Positions 16,501 through 52,324 of a stretch of 64,000 nt of DNA are shown in pieces. The stretch comes from Glycera tridactyla (Eukaryota): assembly GCA_965644265.1 (NCBI GenBank), contig OZ286464.1:91946001-92010000 (forward strand). The letters are read 5' to 3'. The position numbers were made by a program, and so were the translations under genes. A model generated the notes under the pieces. The model was not told the origin of the DNA. It was given only the letters and a program-made list of their open reading frames with translations, and did not search any database. Position 1 is the stretch's first letter; every line of letters begins with the position of its first letter.

Positions 16501-19500
16501 ACCACTCTGATATGCGACCGAGGGTGGTCGTTATAGGGAGGTTCGACTGTATGTGTATTCAAGAGGAGCAATTCATAGTCAACACTGTCCTAAAACTGAC
16601 AAGCTGCTGAAGACAATCACATACTATTTCTAAATCTCTAAATCTCTTGCAACAATTTTTGCAGATGGAATAATGCCTTCCCACTTTTAACGCCTCATTC
16701 CCACCATCCCCATGTAAAATATCTACCTTATTCAAGTATTGGCTAAACATCAGTACTTATCAATCAATCAATCCGAATAATTTCCAATTAGTCAATTCTG
16801 AAAGTGAGACTGATTCCTAACACTAGACCTTCAACTGAAAGTATGAACAAACATATGTCGATGTTATTTGTATCATTGCTGCCTGTTAAGATAAAGATTT
16901 TGTCATAGCCAGTGGAGACTAGTGCTCAAACCCAGATGCAAAAGTGATGATCAAGTAATCAGACTTGGCAGTGAGTGATGATTGATCAAATATTCAAAGT
17001 TCAGACTCACCTGGCTGACAAAGCAATGCAGAAAGTTTGCTGTGAAATCATAGGTTTGTACCCGTATTCAGGGGCAATGGACGCCTTGAAAAATCATCAG
17101 TCTCACAGGGAATACTCTCCCTGTACTGGACATTATAGTCCTACATACCCTTTTGGTGTATTTTGAGCACTTGCTGAAATATTCAGCTTCAAAACTGGTG
17201 GTTTGTGAAATATCAAATCTATGCAAATGATATCAAGATTTTCTCCAGTTATATCATACAAGTACTGAAAATCCCCAAATATTTTATTGATTGTCAACTT
17301 CCATGACCGATTAATCGAATTGTACCTCTCGATGATGCAATAATAAATCTGATTGGGTAATTGTTGAGGTGCTAGTGGAGACTCACCAAGCAGCGAGGAG
17401 ACACATGAGGCAGCAGAGGAGGAAGAGAGCAGCAAGCAACAGGAGGATGATGATGATGATCGCCACCAGCACCGGGTACTGATCAAACCCATCCCAGAAC
17501 ACATACGTAGGCTGCAACATCACATTGGAGTAGTTAAACGTCACATCATCACCATCTGGGCTATATCGAGATGCCCATGGGATATGCAAGGGTGGAATCA
17601 TTCAAGACTCACCCTTCAAGGTCACCGATGGGAGGTGAAAGTTTATGAAATACACAGACACTCAAGGTGTGTACATCAAATTATAGATCATCAATCATAT
17701 GTACAACACATCTTTCATAATACACCTGTGTTAACAATTACCAAAAGTCAGCTGCAATTTAAGATTCTGTCTTTTCCTTTCACTGATGTACTCATCAACC
17801 TGTGAACTACGGTAGTCTCATAATTCCCTACTGACATATAACCAGCATAGATGAAGGTGATATAAAGTTGATACAGGTTGCAGCAGATATTAGGCTTTGG
17901 TCTGACTGTTTGGATATGTTATATTGTATAATGTATTTTTTGCCTGTTTGAATTAAAGGATATTTATGTTTATGTTTATTTCATTGAAAAGATCAAACAT
18001 CTTGAGAATAAACTTGTTGACCCAGCTTCATGGCACAATATTGAGATGTCCACTGATATTCTTGATCATACTATTGCAGGGAAATGAGGACATTTGGTCC
18101 AGTATTTACCTTGAGATCGGTGACAGCGAGTGCTCCAGTCCATGCGGCGCCATCATCAGTCTGAGGTGGCCACAGAAGCTCTATGGCATTATCTGGATCA
18201 TAGATGATACCGGTGTCTACCCGCACCACATGGATCAAAATATCCGTCCTGCAAACTCAAAATTATCTCCATCAGTGTCCAAAACATCTTGTCTTCAAAA
18301 GCCATCCTTGGTAGTAATAGTTGTCAATCAATCAAGAAGTCAATCTTTCAACAAAATACAATTACAACTAAAGTAGCCCCTGTTCCAAAAGATTTATGTG
18401 GAAACCAATACAGTGAAACCTGCATGTCACCTAAATGTAAAATCTAAATATCACCCAAATCAGTCTATCAAAACAGACGGTTTCTCATGACAGGTATATT
18501 TGAGTCTACTTTTGAACCAATCTACAAAGACAACCCCCAGTAGCATCAAAAGTGGCCATTGACGACAGCAGTAGGCCTCTGTAGAGAATTTATTTACAGT
18601 AAAACCTGCTATGGTGTAATCCTGTCCAAAGTGAATCCTGTCTACAGTGAAAAGAAAAATCTGACCCGAACAGTTTTTTTTTCACTATAATTGACCTGTA
18701 TATAGTGAAATCCTGTCTACAGTGAAAAGAAATATCTGGCCCGTGCCTTTTCACTATAGACAGGTTTTACTGTACTGTGGAAAATACTTTGGCAGCCACA
18801 GCTCACAGTGGCCTTCGTGAGCAGGTGGCCTTTCTAAAGAGGTGGTTTTTCAAGCAGGTTCTGATGCCCCATTGCTGCAAAAGCCTATTAACAACCCTTG
18901 TGGTCTCATGCTCTTTTGCAATAAACACATTTTCACATCATCTATGTTTGCATTTCACAACCGTATTTAACGCAGAAAAATTTGAATACCATTGTAAAAT
19001 GCAAAACATAGAAAATGTAAAAGCATAAGTGTCACTTGTTGTATATATGTGATCCTACATGTGAGACCCATCTTCCCATAATTATGGAAACATGCAGAAT
19101 GCACTGATATGTGCTGAATTATTACATATAGATTGTCCAGGAACTGTTCAATGAGCTACCCACCAGTCGGTGATGACGGTATATTCTCCATTGAGATGAT
19201 ATCTGATGTCGTTGAAGCAGACAGCACTTCCTGGAATCACCTGCTGCACCCATCTGTCAAAATAGATACATGTACATAAGATATAAGAAGCTATCCAAGC
19301 ATTCAGAATAGTCAATTTTCTCTGCACACAGCTATAAGCTTCACTTACTTTCGACAGTTTCGATGACAGCCTTGGGTATCTCCATCAGGACTGCTGCGCC
19401 ATTTGGTGGAACTTGACGCAGTTATGTTGTTGTCATTACTGTCCCTCACAGTTTTTCTCATTGCTTGTGTCCACCGTTGTGGTGGGAGAAATGATAGTTG

Positions 19501-23765: not shown

Positions 23766-26700
23766 TTGATTGCAGATCAGCAGCACACAAAGTTGTGTTT
23801 TGTGATCCACAGGAGCTGAATGCTATGTGCCAAAGAGCATTTCATGACTCACCCTTAGAGATCAAGCAAACGCTCAATACAATTTCATTTTCACAGAAAT
23901 CAGTCAAATGGAATACCAGAGAACTTTTGCTGAAACCATTCCTTGATATCCTGATAGCTCTTTCTAGGTTTAACTTTACTCAGATCAGGACAAAATTGCA
24001 TCAGTTCAGGATGACAAATGAATCATTCAAGATTGCAACAAGTATGTAGTTTTCTTAAGCAAGTGAAGTACCCAAAAATGGGGGATTAAACGAAACTTAC
24101 CTGTAAGTTGATGTTTGGACCCCATTATGCAGCACTACGACAGCGAGAGTTAACGGGAGAGGGAGCCACTCGACCGGCACACGTCACACTTTAAATCCTA
24201 TAGCGAGCCCAACCTGAGCTCACCAGCGAGAGTAACCACTCGGGTGGGTCCAGGGAGGGCCCGTTAACTCTCGCTGTCGTAGTGCTGCATAATGGGGTCC
24301 AAACATCAACTTACAGGTAAGTTTCGTTTAATCCCCCATTATACAGCATACGACTACTCGGTTACCGGGAGACTTGAAAGCCCTTAGGTTGGCAAGCTTA
24401 CCTCAACAAGAACGGTCCGTACCCCGAACCGAACATCTGCTGGAAGCTCGTTCCATCAGCTTTCTCTCCACAGTCACATCAGTTCACAATCAAGGTCCAA
24501 TCATTCGTGACGACCAGCGCACACGATCAAATGATTCGTCTGATTAATCCTTTATGATCCAGACTATCCAATCAAGGAAAAGTGAACTCCAAACAGTGAA
24601 CCAACTTATGTACAGTTGAACGTAACTTCAAATCATTACACGAGTCATCAATTGTGGTGTACAGTAGGTGCAGGCTCCAAGACTGCGTTTGCAAACGCTC
24701 CATGTTCAATCACAGGCCGGCGATAATGCCTGGCGAAAGTACTTTCTGATCTCCAACCAGCAGCTGCCATGATAGTATTTAACGGCAGAGATCTCGCCGC
24801 TTTTGAGGTAGACGCAGCTCTGCTGCTGTGAGTCGCAAACTTAATAGTGTCAATCCCAGCTTTGGTCATAGCACTTTTGATCCAACGTTTCACAGTGTCT
24901 CTCGAAGCCTCACCATGAGGCTTGCGAAAAGTAAGAAAAAGGTGTCTCAAGCCACTAGGACGCAGCACACGAGTTCTGTCCAAATAAACATGCAAACACT
25001 TGAGAACACAAATATCATCGTCCTTCCGGTATCTCGGCAGGTGTACCACCACCCGGGCAGATTTTTTCTTGGTGGTTTTGATTCTCTCTGTAATCAGAAA
25101 GCAAGCGCAGTCTGAGGTCAAAGTCATGCTCTTGATGGATAACAGATGCAACGTCTGAGCCCGTTGGCCCGACACCAAAGCAGCCAAAGCTGCCAATTTC
25201 ATAGTCAAAGTTGGCAGGGGCAAGTCCCGATTTCTACCTAGGCCCTTGATGTACCTTAACAGCACATCCGGGTCCCACGTGTCCACATATCTAGGTCCAG
25301 TCGGGGCTGACATAGCCACACCATTCATGAATCTGTCCAGTAACCTTTGTGATCCCAGTTCACACTCAGCCAACGTCAATAAATTAACCACAGCTGCCTT
25401 GGCAGTGTTGACCGCACTGTATCCAAGCCCATCATCAACCAAGCTTTGCAAGAAGGCGATAACCACCCTCACAGTGGCTGCATACGGATCAGTGTCTGTT
25501 CTGTCACAAAACAGTCCCCACCGCCTGAGATATGACTTGTACTGCTCAACCGTTCCCTGGGACCAGCTGTTGATGACAATGGAGGCAGTCCTGTCCGGTA
25601 CCTGAGAGCGTCGCAGCGCCTCCCGGAAAGACACACCGCTATCAACCTCAGCTGGGGGAATAGCGGGTGCACCCTAAAAGGATCAAACGGCAAACGTAAA
25701 GTATACGGCCTACTAGGTACAATGATCGGGTCTGCTACCAGCATGGACAACAGTTTAGCAAACCATGCTTGAGTCGGCCAACATGGGACAATCATCAACG
25801 CCGACGCCTCATCCAGTTGCAACTTCTGCAGGATCCTCCCTATTATTGCAAATGGAGGGAATGCATACAGAGCACCCCCCCCCCCCCCCCCCCCAACTTA
25901 AGCTGAAAGCATCTACAGCTGCAGCACCTGGATCAGGCGTCCATGATACATAAGTGGGAACTTGGTTATTCAGGCGGCTGGCAAACATGTCAACATCAGG
26001 CCAGAACTGCAAGCGTTCACAAACAGCCTCAAATAGTTTGGGGTCAAGCTGCCATTCCGTACTATCACTAAACATCCGGCTACAGAAATCAGCCTCAACG
26101 TTGTCAACCCCAGCTATGTGTTGAGCCGACAGCCAAACGTCCGACTCTACAGCCCATTTCCAGATGTCTCTAGCCACCGCATCACTGACAGGGGACCTAC
26201 TGCCCCCCATCTCATTCACAAATGCTACTGTGGTCCTGTTATCCGACCTAACAAGGACATGATGGCCTTTCAGCTCCACATCAAACGACCTCAACCCATA
26301 CAACACAGCATATAGCTCCAACGTGTTGATATGGAGGCCCTGCTCTTCAAATTTCCACCTGCCACCTGTCGACACACCCAAGAGGTTGGCCCCCCACCCT
26401 TGCATGGAGGCATCAGTGAATAGAATCTTAGTGACCGGGGGTGGCGCCACAGGTCGGACACAATCTTTAGCCAAAGTCAGCCACCAATCAACCTCTGCCA
26501 TCGCAACAGGCGAGAGCTCAAACACACCATCAAGGTTTCCTGACAGTGACTTCATGGCCCTGACCTGCTCATACACCAACCTATGCTTGTGCAAATACGC
26601 AAATTTGACACCCAAACGGCAAGATTCACAGGTACCTACAAATGACATCACCTGCCGCACCGTGGGAAAACCTGTCAACAGTGGCACAGCTTTGATGCGC

Positions 26701-29700
26701 AACTTTTCAACGCGGGTTTCTGTAATGGAGACAGCCATAGCAGTCGAATCAAGTCTCATCCCCAAATGATCCAGCACCTGGACAGGTAGCAATACTGACT
26801 TCTCAAAGTTAACATGGAACCCAAGTCTCTGGAACACTTCAATAGTCATTTCCAGGGCCCGAATACAGCCTTCTCTAGTTTGATGTTGAACATAAATATC
26901 ATCCAAATATCCAATAGCCATAACACCTCTGGATTGCAAGTAGGCCAGCACAGGTTTCAACAACTTAGTAAAGACTCGAGGGGCACAAGCCAGCCCTTGG
27001 GGCAACCCCTGGAACATAAAATGGACCCCCCGCCAGATAAATTTCAGATATTTCCTGAAGTTCCTATGCACAGCCACACTAAAGTATGCGTCTTTAAGGT
27101 CAATACTGGCCATGTAGCAATTAGGTGACATGAGGTCCACACAAGATTCCACAGTTGACATTTTAAAATGCCTGTATTTCATTTGTCGCTTGATCAGCTT
27201 CAAATTGACAATCAACCTGAAAGATTTACCGTCTTTCTTGGGGCGAAGAAATACCCTGGAATAATAATCTCCAGGTTGTTTATGCGTGACAACCAGTACC
27301 CCTTTAGCCAACAATTTGGCAACCAAGTCATCCATATGGGCAGCTTTTTCACCATTCATGACAGTATGTGGCGGACAGACCTGAACTGGCCTGGACAAAA
27401 ATTCAATGGTAACGCCATATCTCACTATATTAAGCACCACAGGGTCATCCGTAATGCCAACCCAGGCATTATAAAATTCAGGCAGATCAGCCGCACTATA
27501 TGGTCTCAAGTTTCCAGCCATACTCACGTTGATATCTACTTGCTCTGCTGCAGAGACTGACTCAGCAGCTGCTGCAGACCCTGCTGAGCTTGCTGTTGCT
27601 GCTTCTGATTGCCCTGGCCCTTGTTCTTCTTCTGGGTGAACATGTTCCCGTATCCGCGACCGCGGGACGAGAAGGTCCCCCGACCTTGCCCGCCCCTGCC
27701 TCGGCCTAAAAAAGGACCCCCGGCACCGCGTTGCATACGTTTCACAGATTTGTGCCTGGGCTTAAACAGCTTATCTGTCACAGTCTGGGCGGTGGAGATT
27801 TTCGAAACTTGATCTCCCAAGTCATCACCGAAGAGAGATTCACCCGGAACAGTGTGCTCTTCGCAAAGGGACTGATACTGCCTCGCAAAGAATGGCCTGA
27901 AGTATTGCTTCCTTTGGGACACCAGCTTGTTCACGGCCGCCACTCCAAAAGTCAGACTGTCCCCCATGAGCTTCTTGACCGTTTTGGCTAACGGGGACTT
28001 GTCCTTGCGGACCAGGTCAAAGGCGCGCAGCTGAGGCACCATGCCTTTACACACGTATTGTTGCGCCTTTTGCAATGCTGCATCACTGCGCTGCTGATAT
28101 GCAGGTACCTTTTTCCAGATTCTCTTCGATATTTTGTTCGTCTCAAGGACCTCCATGCCCTCATTTCCAGGGTACGGATACTCTTTACATTTCAGGTCCA
28201 GTTCAGCATCAGGGGCAGGCCCCCTTCATCATGCCTATAAACAGGCCCGACAGCGAGGACGACACAGCTTCTCCTTTAACTGCATCAATCTTATGGATCT
28301 TCCGAAGATTCCCCATAACCTCATCATCTTCATCGTCATCCACATCCATATCGGATGTCAAATCAAAGTAGTCTGTGCTATCACCGGTAGGCTCATTCTC
28401 CTCAGAGTCCTCAGCCTGCGAAAAATTCCACTCATCATCAGAGTCGGACACATCATGGACCTTGCGCGGAATCCTGCCCGGGGGAGGCCCTGCCGGACGC
28501 GTCATAACCAAGTCCAGCTTGCTAGACAGCGATGTAATAGCAGTAGACACACTACTTATCTGTGATTTCATGTCCGAAACAGACTTTTCCATCTTGCCTA
28601 TGCGCAAATCTGTCTTCTTGCGAAAATCATCACTGGACCGGCTACGACTGTGGCCATGATGCTCACGTTTGTCCCGGCTCCTACTGCCACTATCGGCAGA
28701 AGAATTACTCCTCGAATGATGATTTTTGCTGGGCCGGCTCTCTTTCGACGAATCGTCAGAGGATTTCGTCTGCGACGGCTTGTTTGCAGCGTTATCGTCC
28801 GAAATCGGCTCGAGATCAGGCATGCCGGGGTTTGGCGAAGCCATTTTGAAACACGTGTGGCCGATATTAGGGAATCGGCTCACGACGCGCATGCGCGAGC
28901 ATCCAGAACGAGGCCGGATTATGGGGACTACCCCGGGATACCCCGGGAAACCCCGGCGATTTGGCGAACGCTGACATAGCGTCGCGCGAAGGCGAGGCCC
29001 AACAAGGGAACCCCGTGACGTCACCGCCTCATTGACATAATTTATGCGGAATTCCCTCACGACGCGCATGCGCGAAGTTTCGCAAAGCACTCTGGGAGGA
29101 AAAATCCCAATATTTATACGAAACCCGCCAAAAAATGGCGCCAAATGTCGAAAAAATCGACAACATAGGTTTTCACCTTAATACGCAGTTACCCGACTAG
29201 GGGACTGCTATCCGTATAGAAAGGCTTGGCCTTCGAGGGCAGTCTTTCACGGAGAATCGTTAGTAGACCGTCAGCATGAAGCCGCTTGTCATCTACCACA
29301 TGGCCATAAAATGGCGCCAATGTCGTAATATCGACAATCGTTAATATATCACCTTAATACGCAGTTACCCGACTAGGGGACTGCAATCCGTATAGAACGA
29401 CTTGGCCGTCTAGGGCAGTCTTCCACGGAGAATATCGTTAGTAGACCGTCAGCATGAAGCCGCTTGTCATCTACTATACGACCAATGGCCGCCCGATATT
29501 CCAAGTTAAGGCGATCGTTACTTACCAAAATATACGTCCGAAACGTATACAAAATCATTCCAAGATGGCGGAAACGCTATCTTCCTCAATACGTATTCCA
29601 TAACCCACGACAACAGCGTAAAATCCGGCCATTTGTCGCAGTTTCGGAGAGACGTGCGCCCGTGTCAAGATCTGGCTACCAAGTGATGTGTGCCGGTCGA

Positions 29701-41600: not shown

Positions 41601-44600
41601 GTAGTGTAGCTCATGCCATCTCCACTCACAACTTGGACTTCAACAGGGCCCGGGACCAGCACATTCTCCTGCCAAAATATTGGGAGTTGGTCACCATGTC
41701 ATGTGTCCATCTCTGGACAGAAAGGTCACTTGATGACACATCAAACTGATCGCATAAGCCATTTGCTGACAGAGGGATTCAGATGGATCCTGAAAGCTAC
41801 GTACTTTCCAATGACACTGTTTATGACATGAGTCTACAATTGCTCATATATAGTAGACATCCCAATAATATTGCAGCCTGGCTCTCACCTTGACTACGAC
41901 TGGTGGGACAGGCACAGTCTCAGAGGAGTTGATGTAGGAGGTGTAATTCTTCCATTGAAAGACGGGACGATTATCGTTGACATTCTCGATACTTATAGTG
42001 AGGTTGACATCGGTGAGATGTCCTTCACCGAAACTGTCACCAGCGGTGAATTTGAGGTTGATGCTTTCGAAGGACTCGTAGTCCAAGCATGGCGGCTCGC
42101 CTGGTATCCCATTGCAGTTAGCCACAGTAATCCTACCAGTTCTTGAGTCAGCTCTGAAACTGCAACAACATTGGAAACAAACAGATTTAGATTTTGACAC
42201 TTTATTTATCTTTGTCAATACAATTATACACAGTGAAAGATGTGTACATCTCCAGGGTGACGAATAAAATATACATATTATTAAATATGACAAGGTGATG
42301 AAGAGAATGGTGATGAATACAGGGTAGGACAATGAGGATGAGATGAGTGAGATGGAATATGATGGATGATCGATCCAATACTCAATGAAGTAAACATAAT
42401 TCTCGAAACATAAAATATGGTAATATTGATGTTGACTTTACCATGCTGATTATAACTGACATCGATGGTTTGTATTAAATACTATCAAACAGACTCGTAT
42501 GAGACATAATAATAAAAAGATAATGAAAATCAAAATTATGCAGACCGAAAGGAATCACTGAAAATAGTGAAGACGCTGAAATTTATTATGATTTCAATTT
42601 ATATATTTCAACTCTTTTAGGAACTTCTTGAAAAGGTCTAATTTCAGATCAGCGGTTTCCGGGTATTTGTCTATGTGATTGTGAACAGCAGTGATACAGT
42701 TCCAATAACTGACAAAATCTACAGCATCATTCCTTCCATAACAAGTTTGGCAAGCCTCACGTGAGGCACGTTAAGCCAACTGAAAGGTGTCGACTCTGGT
42801 TTCAAGAAACTTCTTGACAAGTTGTAGAATGCACTCGCCTGCCCCCAAACAAAGAAAACATGATTATTTCTGTGGACGAACTATTGAAATGGTGAAAAAA
42901 TGAAGTCAATTGCAACCAATCTTGTAAATAAACTCACAACGCAAACATTTATTTCTCATGCCAGCGGCCATCATGTCTTCTTCGATAATAACCTTATTCC
43001 CTGAGAGATTGCAGACACAAAGATGATATAGAGGGAAAAATCAGATGCCAGACCGGGGTTGTAGGAATATGGTGCATGAGAAATGGGGATGCCATTGTGG
43101 TGCAATATAAAATAGCCAGTACTCTGCATAAATTACGCAAATGGGGGCGTTTCCTGCCTGAAGCTGTGCTGATAAATTGCGCCTCGCGTCTCTATTAGAC
43201 GTTATCTGTTCATTCAGCAAAATATACTCATGTATTTTTCATCAGTAGACACTTGCCTGGAATCCCTTAAGAATACAAGCATTTGTGCGTGCATGCGTGT
43301 GTGTATGTGTGTGTGTTTTTGCATTTCATGAATGTGAGTGTATAAAGCAAGCAGAATGAATGTATGTGTATATGAATCTGTATGGGGAAAATGCATGTAA
43401 CCATTGTGATCAATGGTGATTCGGGTCAAATTTTTGGTAAAAAGACTAATCAGTGTGAATTTATTGGCAGGACATGGGTGCACATCTATTGGGATCACTT
43501 TGATTGACTTTGAGATGGAGCGGGTGGAGGCATGCCTAAACTTTTCTCCACCATGAAGAAGTACTCACTATTCTGATCCTGCACCACTCAGCCTGTAACG
43601 CAAGGAACTATCACCATATATACCATCGCTATCATCACCGTCTGTGGCCTGAAATACAAACAACAAAAACATGTGTGAGCATGGGTCATGGGTTAAGATA
43701 CATTCACACAGCTAAAATGAATATTCCAGTGTTCAACATAAGAAGCAGTGGAGTTTGCTCATGCATTCCAAAATCCATGCAACTTTGGCAGTTATAGGTA
43801 GGAGACTTTATGTGATATTATGTTCTTCAGATGCAGATTCCCACTCACCGTAATGGTGATGACAAATGTACCAGGAGAGGCATCTTCCGGGACAGATGCA
43901 TAATACAGATTCTGAGCGAATTTCGGGTCATTGTCATTCACATCATCAATGATAACATCCACAGTTGCAGTAGAGGAAAACTGCTCAACCGTCTCTGTCT
44001 CTCTCGCAACCACCTGAAATTGATAGGATTAAAAGCCAATTGGAAACTGGCTGAGAGAAGCAGCACACATCACTAATCAGAGCAGTAATATGCTGTAACA
44101 GTCTTGACTGGAAGCCATTGCCCAATATTCACTGATTAGTCTTGATTGGTTGGTTAGTTGTTTATAACCTTGTAAGCACCAACTGGCCTATAATGAGATG
44201 TCCATGCAATGGTATGGATGGAAGCATTCAAGACTCCTTCTCCTGGCTCCCCAGTAGATGGAGCAGATTCATGAAACTCACTCATTCAAAGTGTCATTTC
44301 TGCTGACCTCTAGTGGTTTGAACACAAACTCTTGATGGAGGGTAATCAAGGCTCTACACTCAAACTTTTCTTCATCTGTTATTTGGGCAGGTGAAGTATG
44401 ATTCTCACCTGCCCTATAGGGTATCCTTCGACTGCTCATATATCATCAATTTAAAGTCACTCTTTGTGACTTCTGTGCATAATCATGATCTGGGCTGGAG
44501 TTGAATGAAATTGAACATCTTCAATTGGTTTCTCTGGGAAAGTTCTCTACTTCCTTACCACAGGCTGAAATTATACCTGCAATGCACCATGATATATTCC

Positions 44601-47600
44601 AATATCCAAAGTTAATTTTTCATGAACAAAATGGCAGCATGGCCAATCCAACATGTCCTCAACCTAAAGTCCAAAAAGAGGAACATTTCCCCTCCAGTTT
44701 GTGTCACTAAAGACATTTTTACCGCAAATCTTTTGGAGTATGTCTGTATGATCAAGCCCTGAGCAAGTAGGCTGACACCATGGAAGCAAGCAAAAGGTCT
44801 TCACAATCACTAACTTTTTCACAGGGGACCATGACAGTCTGTCTAGAAAGATCACACTTGGTCATGAGAAAAATTGGCTTTGGGGTTGTGGAGGGAAGTG
44901 TTCATATGTTTATAATTAATGACTGATTTCACAATACAGTCGAACCTCCCTATAAAGACCGCCTCCGGTCGCATCAAAGAGGGGTCTTTATAGGGAGGTG
45001 GTCTTTATAGAGAGCTTATTCTCTGTTGAAAATACTGCCACGGTCGCAGCTCAGGGTGGTCTTTATAGGGAGGTGGTTTTTATAGAGAGGTGGTCTTTAG
45101 AGGAGGTTCGACTGTACTAACAGGCAATCACAACCAATCAAAACTAGCATAACATGACTGAAAGCTATTTTTACGAAGGACTGAGATGCCGCTAATATGG
45201 CATTATTGTAATGGAGTAAGGCATCAAGGATGGCCTGCATCACAGCTGGTATACCATATCTCAGCAGTTCCTGGAATCCTTCCAGGATGTACAACTTCTT
45301 AGTGAATGAATTCGGAAAAAAAGGTGAGAATTCTAGCAATTCAGAAAGCACTTTGTGGAAAATCATCAAATCAGGTAAGCTACATGAAAAATCAATGGCA
45401 TTCTTATCCCAAACCAATTTATTTTGCTCTTTCACCAAAAGTCATCAAATTAGGAAAATATTCATCTACTATAAACCACCAGCACCACCTCAGTGTGATC
45501 AGGTATGAACATTTTTTTAGCAAATCATTTTAGCAAAATTGATTTTATTTTAGCATTAGACTTCACTGATTAGCTTTAGCTACAATGCTAATCTATAGAG
45601 GGAACCCAGATATGGTATATCCGACTACAGCCTGTGCAGAATCAGCTATTTGATCGCCTGTAGGGAGGTGGTTTGCATCTTTTAGTGCAGTTCATTGTAG
45701 GCAGGTGTTCTTTGTATGAAGGTGACCTTTGGTGCAGGTTTGCCAGTGTGATATATCCCTGAAGTCTAGATAGAGATTTTGTCATTCTGTCATTCAAGCA
45801 TTGTGTTGTGAACTGTTTTTTTGGAGGCATCTTATGATAAATACAACACAGAATAATGTAGAATAGATACTTACAATGAGTTGGTAGTGCTGTCCTGCAG
45901 GTCCCTGATCGTAGTCCAGTGAGCTATCATTTCTCACTCTGATTTCCACCACCTGTGTGCCATCACCACTGGAGGGCGCCACTTCAAACTGTCGCCGTGT
46001 CTCCTCATTGCTAGTCAGCATAACACTGTACCTTGCATAGCTTCCCTGGAAAGGAAACAGAACTTAAATGTAAACATTCATTTCACAATCCTATCAAATC
46101 TGTGCTGTCCGTGGAAACATGGTACGTCATCAAGCCCAATGCCACATCATTTGGTTATATTGGAAAATTTAACAGAATGCATCAAATTGAAGAAGGTAAT
46201 CTCACCAGATCTAAATCAGTGACTGTGAGGGGGATGAAGGTAAGCTCACCAGATCTACATCAGTGACTGTGAGGGAGATGAGGGTAAGCTCACCAGATCT
46301 ACATCAGTGACTGTGAGGGAGATGAGGGTAAGCTCACCAGATCTAAATCAGTGACTGTGAGGGAGATGAGGGTAAGCTCACCAGATCTACATCAGTGACT
46401 GTGAGGGAGATGAGGGTAAGCTCACCAGATCTACATCAGTGACTGTGAGGAGGATAAAGGTAAGCTCACCAGATCTATATCAGTGACTGTGAGGGAGATG
46501 AGGGTAAGCTCACCAGATCTACATCAGTGACTGTGAGGGAGATGAGGGTAAGCTCACCAGATCTATATCAGTGACTGTGAGGGAGATGAGGGTAAGCTCA
46601 CCAGATCTATATCAGTGACTGTGAGGGAGATGAGGGTAAGCTCACCAGATCTATATCAGTGACTGTGAGGAGGATAAAGGTAAGCTCACCAGATCTATAT
46701 CAGTGACTGTGAGGAGGATAAAGGTAAGCTCACCAGATCTAAATCAGTGACTGTGAGGGGGATGAAGGTAAGCTCACCAGATCTATATCAGTGACTGTGA
46801 GGGTGATGAGGGTAAGCTCACCAGATCTATATCAGTGACTGTGAGGGAGATGAGGGTAAGCTCACCAGATCTAAATCAGTGACTGTGAGGAGGATAAAGG
46901 TAAGCTCACCAGATCTATATCAGTGACTGTGAGGGAGAGGAAGGCAGTTCCCACGGGGATGCTCTCTTTGATCTTCATTTCTGATGTTACTGGCGTGATG
47001 GTTGGAGCATATCTGTTGGCATCCTGGAATTCAACGGTGATCTGCTGCTGACTTGTAGTCTGCATGTCCGTCCCGATCGATCCATCTTCCAACACTTCGG
47101 ATGCCTGCAGCCCAAGGAAATATCACATGGATGTGACATTTTCAGTATAGTATCTGGTGTTGAGTATTGCAAATTTCACAGGATGTCACTTGGCCTTCGG
47201 CATAATTCACACCTCATTTGGTATTGCATTTTTACTTCACGGCCATATATTCTTGCTATAATACAGGATACTGAGCATGGCGCTGTGTGAAATCAGTATG
47301 ATGATATATTTTATAGTTCTCTCATGATTTGTAGGTGAAAAAATTGTGTCATGAGCCAAAGTGAGTGAAAAACCAACATGGCGGTGCTGGAATTTACCTG
47401 TTTGCCTCTCACACTGCTTGCCTTTTGCTGCAAAATGCAGCAAGAAATATTTATTTGCAATATACCTCCAAACAGGTTTTTATGCACCAGTGACCACACA
47501 GCCAAACACATTGTATGCACCAGAAGCCACACATCCAAACATGTCATTTGAAGCAAAGGGTCAAAAGGCCCATAACCCCAACCTAGTATTTCACCAATTA

Positions 47601-50600
47601 CTTACCGAGTCATTCATGAGTGGGATGTGTTGATTAGATTTTTATACAGGGCAGCTTCTCGTGGTAAGAATACAGACTGGCACTTACCCTGACAATGATG
47701 TTGATGACACCACTACTGAAGAAGGGGCTTTCTTGAGTGAGTAATGTAGCAGCGGTGAGCTCACCAGTAACTGCGTTGATGTTGAACAAGTTGCCCGGAT
47801 CTGGAGAAAGCAAGAACACACCGTCCTCTTGATGGATGAAATAAGATCTGACCGACTAGGGTGACTCCATCACTCTTAGTGAGAGCAATCAGTGTTGAGT
47901 GTAAATATGTTGTTCTTGCTTCCAAGATGATCCATGATGAAGGTCATGAAGAATTTCATGATGTTTTAACCACACTTAATATAGCAGTTTGAGTCACATG
48001 AGGTATTTGATTGATTTGCTTCAACAAGTTTCAATTTCATGACTGCTACTAACATTGTGTTAATGCCTCTTTACAAACTTTTTAGTTCATTCATATACTC
48101 AGTTAATGAAGGATTCAGAGAGCCAGGTGCACAAAGTGTCTTATCTTACTGTAAAGTCATGGAGAACATCTTAGCCAGTAAGCCACCACCTGAACTACAA
48201 CCACCACACCTTCACAGAAGATGGGAGACTGAATGGTTAAGCCGTGGAGTAATCCTGAACCGGGACCAGCTCCTCGCTTCAAATAACGTTTCTGTGAGTA
48301 TCCGTTCAAATCAACATTAAGATCATGGAAAGCTGGTTACATTGTGACTACAGATAATTGAGCAAGCAAAACGACTTGATTACTGATGTGGGTGTAATTG
48401 TCACCGCTTCTGACAGTAACATCGCTTTCATCTCACCTTTTCAATCTCCTACTGGGGTATTATACTCCATGGTTTGTAAGAATGTAAAATTTACGCTAAT
48501 CAAGAATTACCATGGAATTTCAGCTGCAACAACCCAAATATTGTGTGCAGCGAGGCATAGGGGTGATTATACTCAAACACAAGAACATCCTGTCATTCAA
48601 GACAAAAATGCCAACTCAAGGAGAAAACTCTGGCCAATGAGAGCTTTGATATTGCTGACCCTATATTGATATTCATATGTTGATTGTTCTGGCAAATTTC
48701 TTCAAAGACCAATCTGACTGTGATCTTGTTCTTACGGGCTGATTGATGCAAAATGTACAATAAAACCTGCCACCACACACCCCTGACAAGAGACCATGTC
48801 CGACAGGAGACCGCTTTACCCAGGCAGCTTTTCTAATTGACATAGTCAAATACACCTCTGATGAGTGACCACCTCCTCAATATAATCCTTTTTCATGAAA
48901 TTTGAGGAGGCCTCTAATCACAGGTTTCAGTAAATTTACATGAAATCACCGATAATACCACATTCTTGACAGATGCAGGCCACTCTGACGCGGCTAGGAA
49001 GGAATTTTCTGATAAGGTATCTGCCATTATTGATAGACATGCTCCTATGAAAACCAGAATGTTTTGAGACACAAATCTTCTCTGGATAAATGCTGACTAT
49101 CGTGGTATGATAGATTTATGAGAATACCGCACATCTATCGAACTATAGTGAATTTAGCACTAAAACAAGAAGCTTTTCGACAGCGTGCAGTCTTGAAATG
49201 TCAGTTGATTAAATCTCGCGTTGATAATGTTATCGAGCAAAACTCAGATGATCCAAAGAAAATGTGGACAGAAATTAAGAAACTATGGCCATTAGCAAAG
49301 AAAAATGATATCTTGCCATCATTTCCGCCCACCTGCGATACACCAATCGAGCAAGCAAATATGCTGAATGAGTATTTCTAGTCATAGCACCTCCTATTTA
49401 GTACCTGAGTTGTTGTGATAAGCTTTTGAGGAACCAGTAGTGCTCTACAATATGGACTTGGGTAATAGTGCTATATAGGAACCCATTCTTGTCCGATATA
49501 TGTTGTATGTAGCTATGCATTCTGGGTACTTGATAAGTTCGAATTGTGTGGTATGTTACGTTTGTCTACTTATGCTCGATGTCACCATATCATCCAGGGC
49601 CTTCGCCCAGTGCACCTTTTGTTCTATGTTATATGCACTGTGTTCTATCTATGTGATGACCATGGAAACATGTAACATGACCTTGTCCATTATTCCTTGA
49701 ATAAAACTATTACAACAACAACAACTCTATTCACCATTATTAACAGAATTACTCACTTTGAACAAGGCTATATCTGATCTCGTTCTGCACCGTCTCATCT
49801 CCGTCCACAGCTACGATTGTTGTGATGAGGGTACCCTACAAGTAAACACCCTCCAATCACAAACATCATACACAATAGAATGGAACTATATGTCATAATA
49901 CACGATTGGAATATACATACCAGACTTCTATAAACCACCCAATTTTGTGGGCGGATTTGAACCTGATACCACATCATATACAATAATGAGGTTCAAGCCA
50001 AATCCACATGAAGTAAAGTGAAAACACGTTGACAGGATAAACAGAGCAGGTTTTTGCTTAGTACCAAACAAATTTGAGGCAGGTTCGAATGTATAAATTG
50101 ATTGGGGTAGATATGGGCCCAGGACATCTTTTCATCTTGTTTGAAAGAGCAAGTTTCAGCTGAAGCATGCATGTAATGATAGTGTGCTGTCAACCTCTTC
50201 TAGTATGATGACAAGCATCCATGTAATGATAGTGTGCTGTCAACCCCTACTAGTATGTTGACAAGCATACATGTAATGATAGTGTGCTGTCAACCCCTAC
50301 TAGTATGATGACAAGCATACATGTAATGATAGTGTGCTGTCAACCTCTACTAGTATGATGACAAGCATCCATGTAATGATAGTGTGCTGTCAACCTCTAC
50401 TAGTATGATGACAAGCATCCATGTAATGATAGTGTGCTGTCAACCTCTACTAGTATGATGACAAGCATACATGTAATGATAGTGTGCTGTCAACCTCTAC
50501 TAGTATGATGACAAGCATCCATGTAATGATAGTGTGCTGTCAGCCTCTACTAGTATGATGACAAGCATCCATGTAATGATAGTGTGCTGTCAACCTCTAC

Positions 50601-52324
50601 TAGTATGATGACAAGCATCCATGTAATGATAGTGTGCTGTCAACCTCTACTAGTATGATGACAAGCATACATTAATGATAGTGTGCTGTCAACCTCTACT
50701 AGTATGATGACAAGCATCCATGTAATGATAGTGCGCTGTCAGCCTCTACTAGTATGATGGCAAGCATACATGTAATGATAGTGCGCTGTCAGCCTCTACT
50801 AGTATGATGACAAGCATACATGTAATGATAGTGTGCTGTCAAACTCTACTAGTATGATGACAAGCATACATGTAATGATAGTGTGCTGTCAACCTCTACT
50901 AGTATGATGACAAGCATACATGTAATGATAGTGTGCTGTCAACCTCTACTAGTATGATGACAAGCATCCATGTAATGATAGTGTGCTGTCAACCTCTACT
51001 AGTATGATGACAAGCATCCATGTAATGATAGTGCGCTGTCAGCCTCTACTAGTATGATGACAAGCATACATGTAATGATAGTGTGCTGTCAACCTCTACT
51101 AGTATGATGACAAGCATACATGTAATGATAGTGCGCTGTCAGCCTCTACTAGTATGATGACAAGCATCCATGTAATGATAGTGTGCTGTCAACCTCTACT
51201 AGTATGTTGACAAGCATACATGTACTCACCGCTGCAGTATTATCCTCCAGGTACACTGTCCTTGCTCCGGAGAATACTGGTGGCTGATTGGAGGACTGGG
51301 TGAGGTATATCATTGCCTCCTTTGTCACCACATTTTTACCGTCCTGTTCAAATGCAAGATAGTTGTATACCATCAGTAACAGACATTTTCATTGATGAAG
51401 TAAGTATGTGAAGGGGGCTCCAACGGTGTGCATCATCCCATGACACATCTAACAATCAGTGAAAGACAGGCCCTTTGTGTGGATCTCCCTCTCCTATGCA
51501 CCAATCTTCCATTGGTTGTGATAGACATATGGGTCCTCTTTGATCTTTCACTGTGCACGTCCTATGTGCAGATCTGATGAGTTTATTGTTTTGATGAATA
51601 TCAATACGAGTGAACAAATGGCATGAGAGATTGTAAAATACCAATTGGTTCCAGTATCACTTGATCTTCAGTCATTCCCATGATGCAGAATAAGTGAAAT
51701 ATCTATTTTAGCTGGTAACATGTAAATTTGAATCACCCTGAATAGAAAGCCAATGATTCTGATGTGCTGCCTCTGAGTAACTTCATCATATAAGTACACA
51801 CAGTTGACACAAACATCAATTATAATACAATAATTACTCACGGGAGGAAAGCAAGAGCATGCAGTAGAGGAAGGCTGGTTTTATTCCTCATAAGGTGTAT
51901 ATTGAGAGTGGAAAGACTTGAGACCTCACATCTACTGCTTCTGATAAGCACCTCATTAAGAATAACACCAATCTTCCACCGCTATCACTTCTTGCTATAA
52001 TCCTTCCTCAAAATTCCTCTCTGTCGATATCCAAATATAGTTGCATCACATCCCTTCCTAATGCTGCCTAAACACAGCCAAGACCTGACTCATGTTATCT
52101 ACTATGAGGAACCCACTCAACAAAATGCAGCCAAACCTGCTCAATGAGGGGTGAATGCTGATATGAATGTGAAACACGTGACTTACGCTGGCCCTGAGCA
52201 CCAGGGTGTAGGAGGATCGCTCAGCATAGCTCAGTTGTCGGCTGGTCAGTAGTCTACCGTGCCAATTGTTAATATCCACCGAAATCACGTCCACGCTGAA
52301 TTTGTCACACGGAGTCAGACTGCC
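7245..52324 (-). CDS. Cad87A: Cadherin-87A-like (CDH23/PCDH15-related) non-classical cadherin, multi-exon, 5' end not found in window
   Basis: 31 phase-consistent GT-AG exons give 13 EC repeats (DxNDNxP, LDYE/LDRE, AxDxD motifs), a membrane-proximal domain and a TM helix, plus 3 cytoplasmic exons. The EC3 'EVAPSSGDG..VEIRV..LDYD', EC4 'TVANC..PCLDYE' and EC5 'YEDTPGGQG' segments resemble the Cad87A N-terminal block (from recall, not searched). Cadherin call is near certain; orthology is moderate. Confidence 0.8.
8668..8877 (-). CDS. probable cadherin cytoplasmic exon (MYIDSGGETV...NLSLA)
   Basis: attccag acceptor, GTAAGT donor, 210 nt open, phase 0-0. Confidence 0.7.
9691..9912 (-). CDS. probable cadherin cytoplasmic exon (ELNMALDQVDEIKL...HNQMRQE)
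   Basis: atccag acceptor, GTAAGC donor, 222 nt open, GC-rich versus flanks, phase 0-0. Confidence 0.7.
10500..10648. other. assembly gap next to a CA-rich repeat
   Basis: N run. Confidence 1.
10861..11184. other. assembly gap (could hide cytoplasmic exons)
   Basis: N run. Confidence 1.
13836..14325. mobile_element. ~490-bp element with ~50-bp terminal inverted repeats
   Basis: cctttttttgtggcacctgtttttcgc at about 13846 is inverted at about 14290 (gcgaaaaacaggtgccacaaaaaagg). Confidence 0.6.
14360..14421. repeat. 27-bp tandem repeat, about 2.3 copies
   Basis: catatctgtggtataaaagcaagaaac at 14360, 14387 and partial at 14414. Confidence 0.85.
15920..16549. mobile_element. 630-bp non-autonomous Tc1/mariner-type element (CAGT..ACTG TIR, TA TSD)
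   Basis: ta|cagtcaaacctcc ... ggaggttcgactg|ta; internal 63-bp direct repeat at 16108-16170 and 16224-16286. Confidence 0.8.
17387..17511 (-). CDS. cadherin transmembrane exon (PTYVFW...PVLVAIIIIILLLLAALFLLCCLMCLLAA)
   Basis: ttgcag acceptor, GTGAGT donor, phase 0-2, hydrophobic run of more than 20 aa. Confidence 0.9.
18110..18248 (-). CDS. cadherin exon, membrane-proximal domain (TDILIHVVRVDTG...VTDLK)
   Basis: ttgcag acceptor, GTAAAT donor, phase 2-0. Confidence 0.82.
18597..18772. mobile_element. 176-bp MITE (TA TSD) nested in an older MITE
   Basis: ta|cagtaaaacctg ... caggttttactg|ta. Confidence 0.8.
19164..19253 (-). CDS. cadherin exon, membrane-proximal domain (WVQQVIPGSAVCFNDIRYH...)
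   Basis: tgacag acceptor, GTGGGT donor, phase 2-2. Confidence 0.8.
19311..20100 (-). mobile_element. Penelope-like element fragment (GIY-YIG endonuclease region) bounded by ~50-bp inverted repeats
   Basis: LPYVKAVTEKL...IKPHRTIRSILVHPKDK...VVYKVDCKNC..YVGETG is a typical PLE GIY-YIG; IR 19311-19369 vs 20051-20100. Confidence 0.85.
20176..20264 (-). CDS. cadherin exon, membrane-proximal domain (IWVTEPAQEMTLTITKPPEEVR...)
   Basis: ttgcag acceptor, GTAAGT donor, phase 0-2. Confidence 0.82.
20877..21160 (-). CDS. cadherin exon, EC13 (ISVEAPFATTV...ALDED...GDTDAR)
   Basis: gatcag acceptor, GTACGT donor, phase 1-0. Confidence 0.9.
21746..21997 (-). CDS. cadherin exon, EC12-EC13 (GNGDEAFRI...LDHE...IDMNDSPPTF)
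   Basis: aaccag acceptor, GTAAGT donor, phase 1-1. Confidence 0.92.
22021..22198. mobile_element. 178-bp MITE (TA TSD)
   Basis: ta|cagtcaaacttgtccta ... taggacaagtttgactg|ta. Confidence 0.85.
22847..22973 (-). CDS. cadherin exon, EC12 (NCCTIPYTYNISENLPP...ATDKDIG...YFIV)
   Basis: tgacag acceptor, GTAAGT donor, phase 0-1. Confidence 0.9.
23483..23593 (-). CDS. cadherin exon, EC11-EC12 (VILVARDSGIPVMSS...EDIGDNDPEFPQYQ)
   Basis: caccag acceptor, GTGAGT donor, phase 0-0. Confidence 0.9.
23698..23770. repeat. (TGAT)n microsatellite
   Basis: direct reading. Confidence 0.9.
24260..24371. repeat. DIRS internal complementary region (circular-junction copy)
   Basis: 24260-24339 is the reverse complement of 24078-24157, and 24337-24371 is the reverse complement of 29710-29744, with no mismatch seen. 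Confidence 0.92.
24648..25634 (-). CDS. DIRS ORF3 tyrosine recombinase (phage-integrase fold), overlapping ORF2 end
   Basis: Catalytic residues visible: SGQR (R), IKTTK (K), HSSR (H-x-x-R), GW, FARHY (Y); frame open from 25673, no ATG near the 5' end. Confidence 0.93.
   Translation of the reverse strand: MSFREALRRSQVPDRTASIVINSWSQGTVEQYKSYLRRWGLFCDRTDTDPYAATVRVVIAFLQSLVDDGLGYSAVNTAKAAVVNLLTLAECELGSQRLLDRFMNGVAMSAPTGPRYVDTWDPDVLLRYIKGLGRNRDLPLPTLTMKLAALAALVSGQRAQTLHLLSIKSMTLTSDCACFLITERIKTTKKKSARVVVHLPRYRKDDDICVLKCLHVYLDRTRVLRPSGLRHLFLTFRKPHGEASRDTVKRWIKSAMTKAGIDTIKFATHSSRAASTSKAARSLPLNTIMAAAGWRSESTFARHYRRPVIEHGAFANAVLEPAPTVHHN
25469..27527 (-). CDS. DIRS ORF2 reverse transcriptase / RNase H / DNA N6-adenine methyltransferase-like, frameshift at C20 run 25875-25894
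   Basis: SIDLKDAYF, LPQGL..APRVF, GYLDD, FTDAS, INTLEL, SDN, NVEAD, DMFASRLN; then LYAFPPF...IVPCWPTQAWF in the shifted frame. Confidence 0.93.
27536..28844 (-). CDS. DIRS ORF1 gag-like protein, split by a 1-nt frameshift near 28220-28224
   Basis: ATG at 28844 (MASPNPG...); basic/acidic low-complexity N-terminus; continues in the next frame as DAELDLKCKEYPYPGN...IWKK...SLFGDDL...RGRGG to stop at 27536. Confidence 0.75.
29804..29992 (-). CDS. cadherin exon, EC11 (NQPPGKFV...AVDED...FDRESRDTYQ)
   Basis: gatcag acceptor, GTGAGT donor, phase 0-0; the DIRS element starts 58 nt downstream. Confidence 0.92.
30307..30524 (-). CDS. cadherin exon, EC10-EC11 (MFRLDPNTG...RDNGIPPLSG...GVPE)
   Basis: ttgcag acceptor, GTGAGT donor, phase 1-0. 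Confidence 0.92.
30911..31088. mobile_element. 178-bp MITE (TA TSD)
   Basis: ta|cagtcaaacctg ... caggttcgactg|ta; internal ggtggtcttta subrepeats; an older relative is adjacent at about 30745-30908. Confidence 0.85.
31268..31448 (-). CDS. cadherin exon, EC9-EC10 (LYVYLMDENDNNPRF...AYDPD...GGNGG)
   Basis: tttcag acceptor, GTGAGT donor, phase 0-1. Confidence 0.92.
32398..32520 (-). CDS. cadherin exon, EC9 (GVVTVVNPARLDRE...YATVP)
   Basis: ttgcag acceptor, GTAAGT donor, phase 0-0. Confidence 0.92.
32550..32722. repeat. (AAT)n-rich microsatellite upstream of the acceptor of exon 32398-32520
   Basis: direct reading. Confidence 0.9.
32785..32934 (-). CDS. cadherin exon, EC9 (PFYNTTVRENSPAGT...ATDRDLG...NNIT)
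   Basis: ttgcag acceptor, GTAAAT donor, phase 0-0. Confidence 0.92.
33543..33700 (-). CDS. cadherin exon, EC8 (VLYVARPMDYE...NINDNNPTFIE)
   Basis: ctgcag acceptor, GTGAGA donor, phase 1-0. Confidence 0.92.
34600..34821 (-). CDS. cadherin exon, EC7-EC8 (SLIINILHVNDQYPEF...NDPD...SDNS)
   Basis: tttcag acceptor, GTCAGC donor, phase 1-1. Confidence 0.88.
35191..35323 (-). CDS. cadherin exon, EC7 (SWFSIDSVTGAVRV...LQRD...DQTGD)
   Basis: cttgtag acceptor, GTAAGC donor, phase 0-1. Confidence 0.9.
36021..36163 (-). CDS. cadherin exon, EC7 (TPMQQVVTTMSATDPD...DVNYP)
   Basis: tttcag acceptor, GTACGT donor, phase 1-0. Confidence 0.87.
36694..36820 (-). CDS. cadherin exon, EC6-EC7 (VIAADKGTPPMSATGTV...DANNKKPAF)
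   Basis: attcag acceptor, GTAAGT donor, phase 0-1. Confidence 0.9.
38450..38637 (-). CDS. cadherin exon, EC6 (GTTVVNVEANDADP...FDYD...YMMR)
   Basis: gaacag acceptor, GTATGT donor, phase 1-0. Confidence 0.9.
39564..39639 (-). CDS. cadherin exon, EC5-EC6 linker (DRNDNPPVF...PEDTQP)
   Basis: ttttcag acceptor, GTAAGT donor, phase 0-1. Confidence 0.9.
39700..39910 (-). mobile_element. possible degenerate LINE RT fragment
   Basis: DLNDRLLKL..CEVVTHLCKFVI...LKSV resembles the D.I..RLLK...LTHL.N region of CR1/L2 RT. Confidence 0.3.
40222..40291 (-). CDS. cadherin exon, EC5 (YQMTVRANDGRNSDTCTVWIYVL)
   Basis: tttcag acceptor, GTATGT donor, phase 2-0. Confidence 0.88.
41206..41348 (-). CDS. cadherin exon, EC5 (AEDADGDVIQYSII...YEDTPGGQG)
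   Basis: ttgcag acceptor, GTAAGT donor, phase 0-2. Confidence 0.9.
41889..42159 (-). CDS. cadherin exon, EC4-EC5 (FRADSRTG...PCLDYE...NVNDNRPVF...VVVK)
   Basis: ttgcag acceptor, GTGAGA donor, phase 2-0. Confidence 0.92.
43569..43648 (-). CDS. cadherin exon, EC4 (ATDGDDSDGIYGDSSLRYRLSGAGSE)
   Basis: tttcag acceptor, GTGAGT donor, phase 0-2. Confidence 0.88.
43849..44013 (-). CDS. cadherin exon, EC3-EC4 (VVARETE...DDVNDNDPKF...VITIT)
   Basis: tttcag acceptor, GTGAGT donor, phase 0-0, canonical DxNDNxP. Confidence 0.92.
44937..45114. mobile_element. 178-bp MITE (TA TSD), same family as 30911
   Basis: ta|cagtcgaacctcc ... ggaggttcgactg|ta. Confidence 0.85.
45875..46045 (-). CDS. cadherin exon, EC3 (GSYARYSV...LDYDQG...YQLI)
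   Basis: tttccag acceptor, GTAAGT donor, phase 0-0. Confidence 0.88.
46197..46938. repeat. 44-bp minisatellite, 17 units, each containing the exon 3' end plus the 5' splice donor
   Basis: taagctcaccagatct units start every 44 nt from 46197 to 46901. Confidence 0.95.
46910..47104 (-). CDS. cadherin exon, EC2-EC3 (ASEVLEDG...DANRYAP...VTDIDL)
   Basis: ctgcag acceptor, GTGAGC donor, phase 0-0; its 3' end is the seed of the 44-bp array. Confidence 0.88.
47688..47800 (-). CDS. cadherin exon, EC2 (NPGNLFNINAVTGEL...IIVR)
   Basis: ttctccag acceptor, GTAAGT donor, phase 1-0. Confidence 0.88.
48960..49385 (+). mobile_element. degenerate CR1/L2-type LINE ORF2 fragment (endonuclease-RT linker)
   Basis: IIDRHAPMKTR...WIN, DDPKKMWTEIKKL, EQANMLNEYF; a possible endonuclease end motif (DVGVIVTASD) lies near 48380-48420. 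Confidence 0.65.
49757..49835 (-). CDS. cadherin exon, EC2 (GTLITTIVAVDGDETVQNEIRYSLVQ)
   Basis: ttgtag acceptor, GTGAGT donor, phase 0-1; not in ORF track. Confidence 0.85.
50165..51224. repeat. 50-bp minisatellite, ~21 units, abutting the donor of exon 51230-51343
   Basis: atgtaatgatagtgtgctgtcaacctctactagtatgatgacaagcatmc units at 50171, 50221 ... 51170, with a 1-nt deletion in the unit at 50671. Confidence 0.95.
51230..51343 (-). CDS. cadherin exon, EC1-EC2 linker (DGKNVV...SNQPPVF...NTAA)
   Basis: gaacag acceptor, GTGAGT donor, phase 0-0. Confidence 0.85.
52187..52324 (-). CDS. cadherin exon, EC1 second half (GSLTPCDKF...YTLVLRAS)
   Basis: tttcag acceptor, GTAAGT donor, phase 0-0, joins next exon to give YTLVLRASDG. 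Confidence 0.85.

Follow-up and report, generated by a model that had tools for sequence, protein, structure and literature searches.

A 44-bp splice-donor minisatellite with 17 units at the 5' end of a cadherin intron of Glycera tridactyla, and the use of its first donor in assembled RNA

The stretch of DNA analysed here, a window of 64,000 nucleotides, contains on its minus strand an intron that begins with 17 units of a 44-bp tandem repeat, each of which carries a 5' splice site. The array fits the known type of splice-donor minisatellite, represented by the VNTR of human F7 and the 'mirages' of amphioxus, in that its first monomer spans the exon-intron border, the donor is reiterated, and the most upstream donor is the one used. 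We consider it highly probable that the array is a near-neutral repeat of this mirage type, with the first donor in use and most likely without a function of its own.

Results and Discussion

Structure of the Array

Tandem Repeats Finder (TRF) detects the array at window positions 46195-46938 as 16.9 copies of a 44-bp unit, with 94% matches, without indels, and with a score of 1271, which is far beyond chance. When the units are set in register one by one, the minisatellite comprises 17 units on the minus strand (46195..46943), with the pentanucleotide CCTTC at both borders. In the minus-strand register, unit 1 is the true 3' end of the exon together with the genuine donor, while units 2-17 are copies lying within the intron; the first monomer of the tandem array thus spans the exon-intron border, as given by TRF and by the exon end at 46910, which is fixed by RNA contigs. 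The donor G is found at 46909 minus 44k over the 17 units, so that the 16 pseudo-donors have their G(+1) at 46865, 46821 and so forth in 44-nt steps down to 46205 (46205..46865, minus strand, from the unit listing). The donor reads CTG/GTGAGC in units 1-16 and CTG/GTGAGA in unit 17; of the 16 reiterations of the genuine donor, 15 match it at every position from -3 to +6 and one departs from it at +6. Unique intron sequence resumes past unit 17.

A previous description based on the letters alone (hereafter the sequence-only reading) had proposed a 17-fold amplification of an exon end plus donor with a 44-bp period, and both the copy number given by TRF and the 17 units in register bear this out. 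Its statement that the copies stand in their full exonic context is overstated, because each unit contains, depending on where it is cut relative to CCTTC, 29-34 nt of the 195-nt exon and 10-15 nt of the intron.

Variation among the units is limited to a 9-nt C/T-rich stretch and one more site (A/T/G), the other 34 nt being invariant. The units nearest to the exon version are unit 5, an inner one, and unit 17, the last, and the inner units fall into two homogenised types. This is the variation pattern of a drifting minisatellite.

Each unit (46196-46909) also has the hexamer CTTACC directly after the donor, which results in the near-palindrome GGTGAGCTTACC. The hexamer matches the 5' end of U1 snRNA. 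Pairing is possible between the donor of one unit and the CTTACC of a different one, and the prediction has all 17 donors mostly paired.

The Cadherin Gene

The host of the array is, as judged from the encoded peptides, a multi-repeat cadherin gene on the minus strand. The Pfam Cadherin family (PF00028) is matched by six exon ORFs between 20.8 and 38.6 kb of the window, canonical DxNDxxP linkers recur between 21.8 and 43.9 kb, a hydrophobic membrane span is located at 17386-17601 (about 17.4-17.6 kb), and a search of the ESM Atlas returned 'cadherin' as the sole label. At least two cadherin repeats are encoded upstream of the array within the window, and RNA contigs extend upstream of the donor for at least 1,539 nt. 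A retroelement with long open frames lies inside a cadherin intron (24651-29177, minus strand); it has Pfam matches to RVT_1, RT_RNaseH, and Phage_integrase (tyrosine recombinase), appears to be DIRS-like, and coincides with a block of 49-50% GC.

The exon that precedes the array (46910..47104, minus strand, 195 nt) encodes the last part of one cadherin repeat together with the linker DANRYAP, as well as the beginning of the following repeat; its translation ends in ...LSLTVTDIDL. Its borders are given by the spliced contigs of four RNA runs (46909/10-47103/4, GT..AG) and its content by translation. The next exon (45875..46045, minus strand, GSYARYSVML...), delimited in the same way by spliced contigs and translation, continues the same repeat in phase 0. 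Neither of the two exons flanking the array gave a Pfam match when searched singly. In a pairwise comparison, a second linker exon of the cadherin gene matches exon 46910-47104 (E 4e-4), TDIDL falling on YDPDV of the sister repeat, in line with the sequence-only reading, which had placed a DxD segment at the exon end. The exon end is thus the DxD calcium-site segment of a cadherin repeat and, since this is an ordinary conserved cadherin segment, the exon is to be seen as the parent and the units as its copies.

Donor Used in RNA

Splicing was followed in the spliced contigs of four public RNA runs (X1, X2, X4, and X6), which come from two studies and carry two organism labels, over positions 43500-47900. 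Such assembled contigs represent the dominant isoform and drop rare ones, and no ratio of isoforms is obtainable from them. In each of the four runs, one contig joins 46045 to 46910, that is, to the first and most upstream donor; the joint is 46044->46909 (cut +1) in X1, X2, X4, and X6, with CT..AC ends on the plus strand. The intron defined in this way (46046..46909, minus strand) is 864 nt long, extends from GT at 46909-46908 to AG at 46047-46046, and has the array as its first 714 nt. The neighbouring introns 47105-47687, 44014-45874, and 43649-43848 are confirmed by the same contigs. None of the joints listed for the four runs starts from a later donor, the contigs standing for the dominant form only.

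The exon borders that had been read from the letters (46910 and 45875-46045) are exactly those of the spliced contigs. The mapping of junctions into exon 45875-46045, which had been suggested as a check, gives the first donor in all four runs as far as the dominant form is concerned, and the idea offered at the same time as an alternative, namely a strong preference of the cell for the most upstream donor, agrees with both these contigs and the published behaviour of F7.

In X1 and X6, small contigs also cover units of the array's upstream half, with a depth of about 3 as compared to 16-31 on the exons. These may be unspliced RNA, carry-over of DNA, or alternative products. One of them represents a unit variant that is absent from the assembly. 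Two intronic stretches, 44935-45118 (which includes a 17-bp tandem) and 47121-47260, have contig depths of thousands to tens of thousands in all four runs and many loose ends, and resemble copies of an interspersed repeat that is abundant and transcribed.

Consequences of Splicing at the Later Donors

Read-through of the first donor adds LVSLPLSSSQSLI and then reaches a TAG at 46873-46871. This in-frame stop (46871..46873, minus strand), which closes the ORF 46871..47095, would be met by unspliced transcripts and by those spliced at any of donors 2-17. The two exons were concatenated by script to locate the first stop, which is identical for n = 2-17. The claim that donor 1 alone keeps the frame and that every other donor leads to a premature stop is therefore upheld, with one TAG shared by donors 2-17. 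RNAs with an early stop and many exons downstream are expected targets of nonsense-mediated decay (NMD).

The match to the donor consensus is 6 of 9 positions for the genuine donor and 6-7 for its neighbours. Splicing at the last pseudo-donor would leave an intron of 160 nt, which is feasible because a neighbouring intron measures 200 nt. Each of the 17 donors has a predicted probability of 0.17-0.23 of being unpaired. RNA structure was considered as the cause of the first-donor choice and rejected, since the predicted accessibility is the same for all 17. Neither the sequence nor the predicted structure singles out donor 1.

Comparison with Known Systems

The closest likeness is to the VNTR of intron 7 of human F7, where the first 37-bp monomer spans the exon border and 4-8 identical pseudo-donors follow (PMC1557585). 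Splicing there takes the most upstream donor alone, and strengthening the pseudo-sites does not alter this (Borensztajn et al. 2006, PMC1557585); a structural reason was not found by the authors, who proposed a 5'-to-3' oriented choice that is helped by exon definition (PMC1557585). The present array shares with F7 the border-spanning first monomer, the reiterated donors, splicing from the most upstream one, and the failure of structure to explain the choice. The F7 repeat, however, is made up of 5-9 units, each with 4 nt of exon, and varies in length among people, whereas 17 units with about 30 nt of exon each are found here. The same layout with use of the genuine donor alone has been described for LAMIN B2 and PDGF (PMC1557585).

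In IFI6 (6-16), 25 pseudo-sites follow the donor and the two nearest are used, and two are likewise used in intron 13 of CBS (PMC1557585). Intron 2 of human IFI6 and intron 13 of CBS resemble the present case in that a donor is reiterated 15-25 times behind the genuine one. They differ in that the two nearest pseudo-sites are used constitutively, while no such use is seen among the contig joints listed here, where it would break the frame.

The amphioxus mirages are tandem repeats that span exon borders, leave normal splicing intact, and have homogenised inner units and older edge units (PMC3087553). They are known from Adh3 of amphioxus (Canestro et al. 2002, as cited in PMC3087553) and from its globins (PMC3087553). 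They resemble the present array as minisatellite-like border duplications that keep normal splicing, combine homogenised inner units with older edge units, and occur in several genes of one genome. Differences are the phylum, the occurrence of acceptor-side cases, the units of 150-160 bp in globins, and the somatic instability reported for mirages. A further parallel (PMC3265369, PMC4974935) is the gain of introns by tandem duplication of a segment that contains AGGT, in which duplication also creates extra splice signals; the new intron arises inside an exon in that process, whereas an existing intron has been lengthened here.

Origin and Persistence of the Array

On the preferred reading, a 44-bp piece lying across the exon-intron border would have been duplicated in tandem. 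It is likely that this started by slippage at the 5-nt direct repeat CCTTC, since the piece is bounded by this microhomology, and slippage or unequal exchange would then have expanded the array to 17 units. As the assembled RNA contigs show, splicing starts from the most upstream donor; the 16 other donors are thus removed together with the intron, and the protein stays unchanged. By analogy to F7, donor 1 may win because the choice runs 5' to 3' and settles on the first functional donor behind the exon, with exon definition helping. Transcripts made from later donors would carry the premature TAG and would probably be removed by NMD. The array would thus be tolerated because its first donor is the one used, and it is most likely functionless, drifting as a near-neutral intronic repeat. 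It is possible that a minority use of donors 2-17 is masked by NMD, given the use of the two nearest pseudo-sites in IFI6 and CBS. One point speaks against neutral drift: an identical copy number in two genomic copies, described below, is unusual for a freely drifting minisatellite.

The Second Genomic Copy

The same array is present at C13:92,145,262-92,146,007, at a distance of 153,073 bp from the window's copy. The comparison of copy number is thus one between two genomic copies of a single assembly. Over 3.2 kb, 8 SNPs and no indel separate the two copies; both arrays have 17 units and differ from each other by one SNP, in unit 15. They belong to a block of at least 120 kb, with the cadherin gene in it, that is duplicated in tandem (C13, about 91.92-92.04 Mb versus 92.08-92.21 Mb). 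Within the block the two copies are 91-99.75% identical, and their offset varies from 151 to 167 kb, a variation to which a 97-bp array contributes about 1,071 bp. The two exons that flank the array give identical peptides from both copies, and at six exonic diagnostic sites the RNA contigs carry the letter of the second copy in five cases and that of the window in one. The block is either a true tandem gene duplication with gene conversion or a pair of haplotypes assembled in tandem.

That the copy number, or the second copy itself, is an artefact of assembly (through collapse or expansion of the repeat, or through tandem placement of two haplotypes) is an unlikely explanation. It would account for the small difference of 8 SNPs without an indel over 3.2 kb and for the mixture of alleles of both copies in the RNA contigs. 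Against it, the identical order of 17 units was assembled independently in both copies, and at other places the copies are separated by a difference of 2-9% and by large indels, such as the one of about 1,071 bp in the 97-bp array, which looks like real divergence. Furthermore, array units occur in contigs of RNA runs from other individuals, including the variant unit that the assembly does not contain.

Alternative Roles for the Array

The sequence-only reading had suggested that the array could be a decoy bank or heritable tuning knob, in which U1 is spread over 17 equal donors, wrong choices are fed into NMD, and the array length sets the dose of cadherin. The equality of the donors in both sequence and predicted accessibility suits this idea, as does the premature stop that follows from every wrong choice, and the use of the two nearest pseudo-sites in IFI6 and CBS as well as the faint contig cover on the first array units point the same way. 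The first-donor junction is, however, alone among the joints listed in all four runs, and the pseudo-sites of F7 do not compete even when strengthened. In addition, the two genomic copies are equal in length, and an array length that has stayed unchanged while the flanks diverged by 0.25% speaks against a fast-moving knob. With none of the listed joints alternative and the copy number identical in both copies, the suggestion finds no support, and we regard it as improbable.

The intronic donor copies could instead serve as a landing pad for U1 snRNP, which would speed the use of the first donor or keep the pre-mRNA from being cleaved prematurely. Such effects can be exerted by intron-bound U1, and the donor core is invariant in all 16 copies while other positions of the unit vary. 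The invariant block, however, spans 34 nt and so extends beyond the donor alone, and with few unit variants, shared by descent, selection is not needed to explain the invariance of the donor. A neighbouring 50-bp array in a like position has, moreover, lost the donor. This role is accordingly very improbable. It is hardly credible that the array is raw material for new exons or introns, with units spliced in as micro-exons: although the unit has the layout Py-tract-CAG/17 nt/GTGAG and such a model is discussed for mirages (PMC3087553) and for tandem duplications (PMC3265369), an insert of 17 nt would disrupt the frame, the distance of 27 nt between adjacent signals is too small for an intron, and none of the listed joints is of this kind.

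Other Arrays at Intron 5' Ends

Three such arrays lie in or beside the cadherin gene, namely the 44-bp array, a 50-bp array, and a 97-bp array. The 50-bp minisatellite (50163..51224, minus strand, 21.3 copies by TRF) starts at +6 of the intron that would follow an exon ending at 51230 (GCG/GTGAGT), the latter placed from the cadherin consensus and splice signals. It is the second array at an intron 5' end in the cadherin gene, its units are without a donor, and it is also found at positions 9234-10000 of locus L024. The 97-bp array has 12 copies with units containing AAG/GTGAGA (minus strand, L018 2593-3760 = C13:92,022,593-92,023,760) and is about 1,071 bp shorter in the other genomic copy. 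An ORF that starts with ATG and has a signal-peptide-like beginning (MENTELVFLSFSYVWIG...CGGQ) ends at the first donor of this array, which may therefore be a third exon-end/donor array, located behind a possible first exon.

Such clustering raises the question of whether donor-side minisatellites are unusually frequent in this genome and concentrated at intron 5' ends. We hold this to be doubtful; the alternative is random seeding in a genome rich in minisatellites. Unbiased TRF on 264 kb of local sequence shows that two or three of about 10 arrays touch donors, which is no more than suggestive in view of the way in which the window was chosen. The same 264-kb sample has a density of about one minisatellite per 22 kb, and about 3.5% of random 44-bp gene segments would span a donor; by this crude estimate, random seeding alone could yield tens of donor arrays in about 36 Mb. 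A genome-wide pattern scan for a triple AGGTRAGT with a spacing of 25-55 gave 5,786 matches, the first 100 of which are spread over five loci within 6 Mb of contig C1. As a control, the reversed pattern yielded 26,144 matches and is swamped by the (TGGA/TGAA)n simple repeat, so that no enrichment of donor arrays can be claimed. If the excess were true, it might reflect a mutational process tied to the junction or a lineage whose spliceosome tolerates such arrays unusually well.

Two further arrays were observed. A 54-bp array with a consensus donor (AGGTAAGTCACTTGTTACAG...) occurs twice, 53.5 kb apart, at C1:248,982-249,475 and C1:302,540-302,763. A 42-bp minisatellite with 69 copies (L027 4365-7266, C13:92,204,365-92,207,266) keeps three of the six frames open along about 3 kb; because 42 is a multiple of three, these open frames are no evidence of coding.

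Conclusions

For annotation, such arrays mean that gene predictors may choose the wrong donor. The array alone matters little, but it provides a natural case of 17 equal 5' splice sites in a row of which the first is used, in agreement with the F7 rule that the first functional donor wins, and the rule is thereby extended to an invertebrate-type cadherin gene. The arrays that recur in this genome are natural test cases for 5' splice-site choice and for the seeding of minisatellites.
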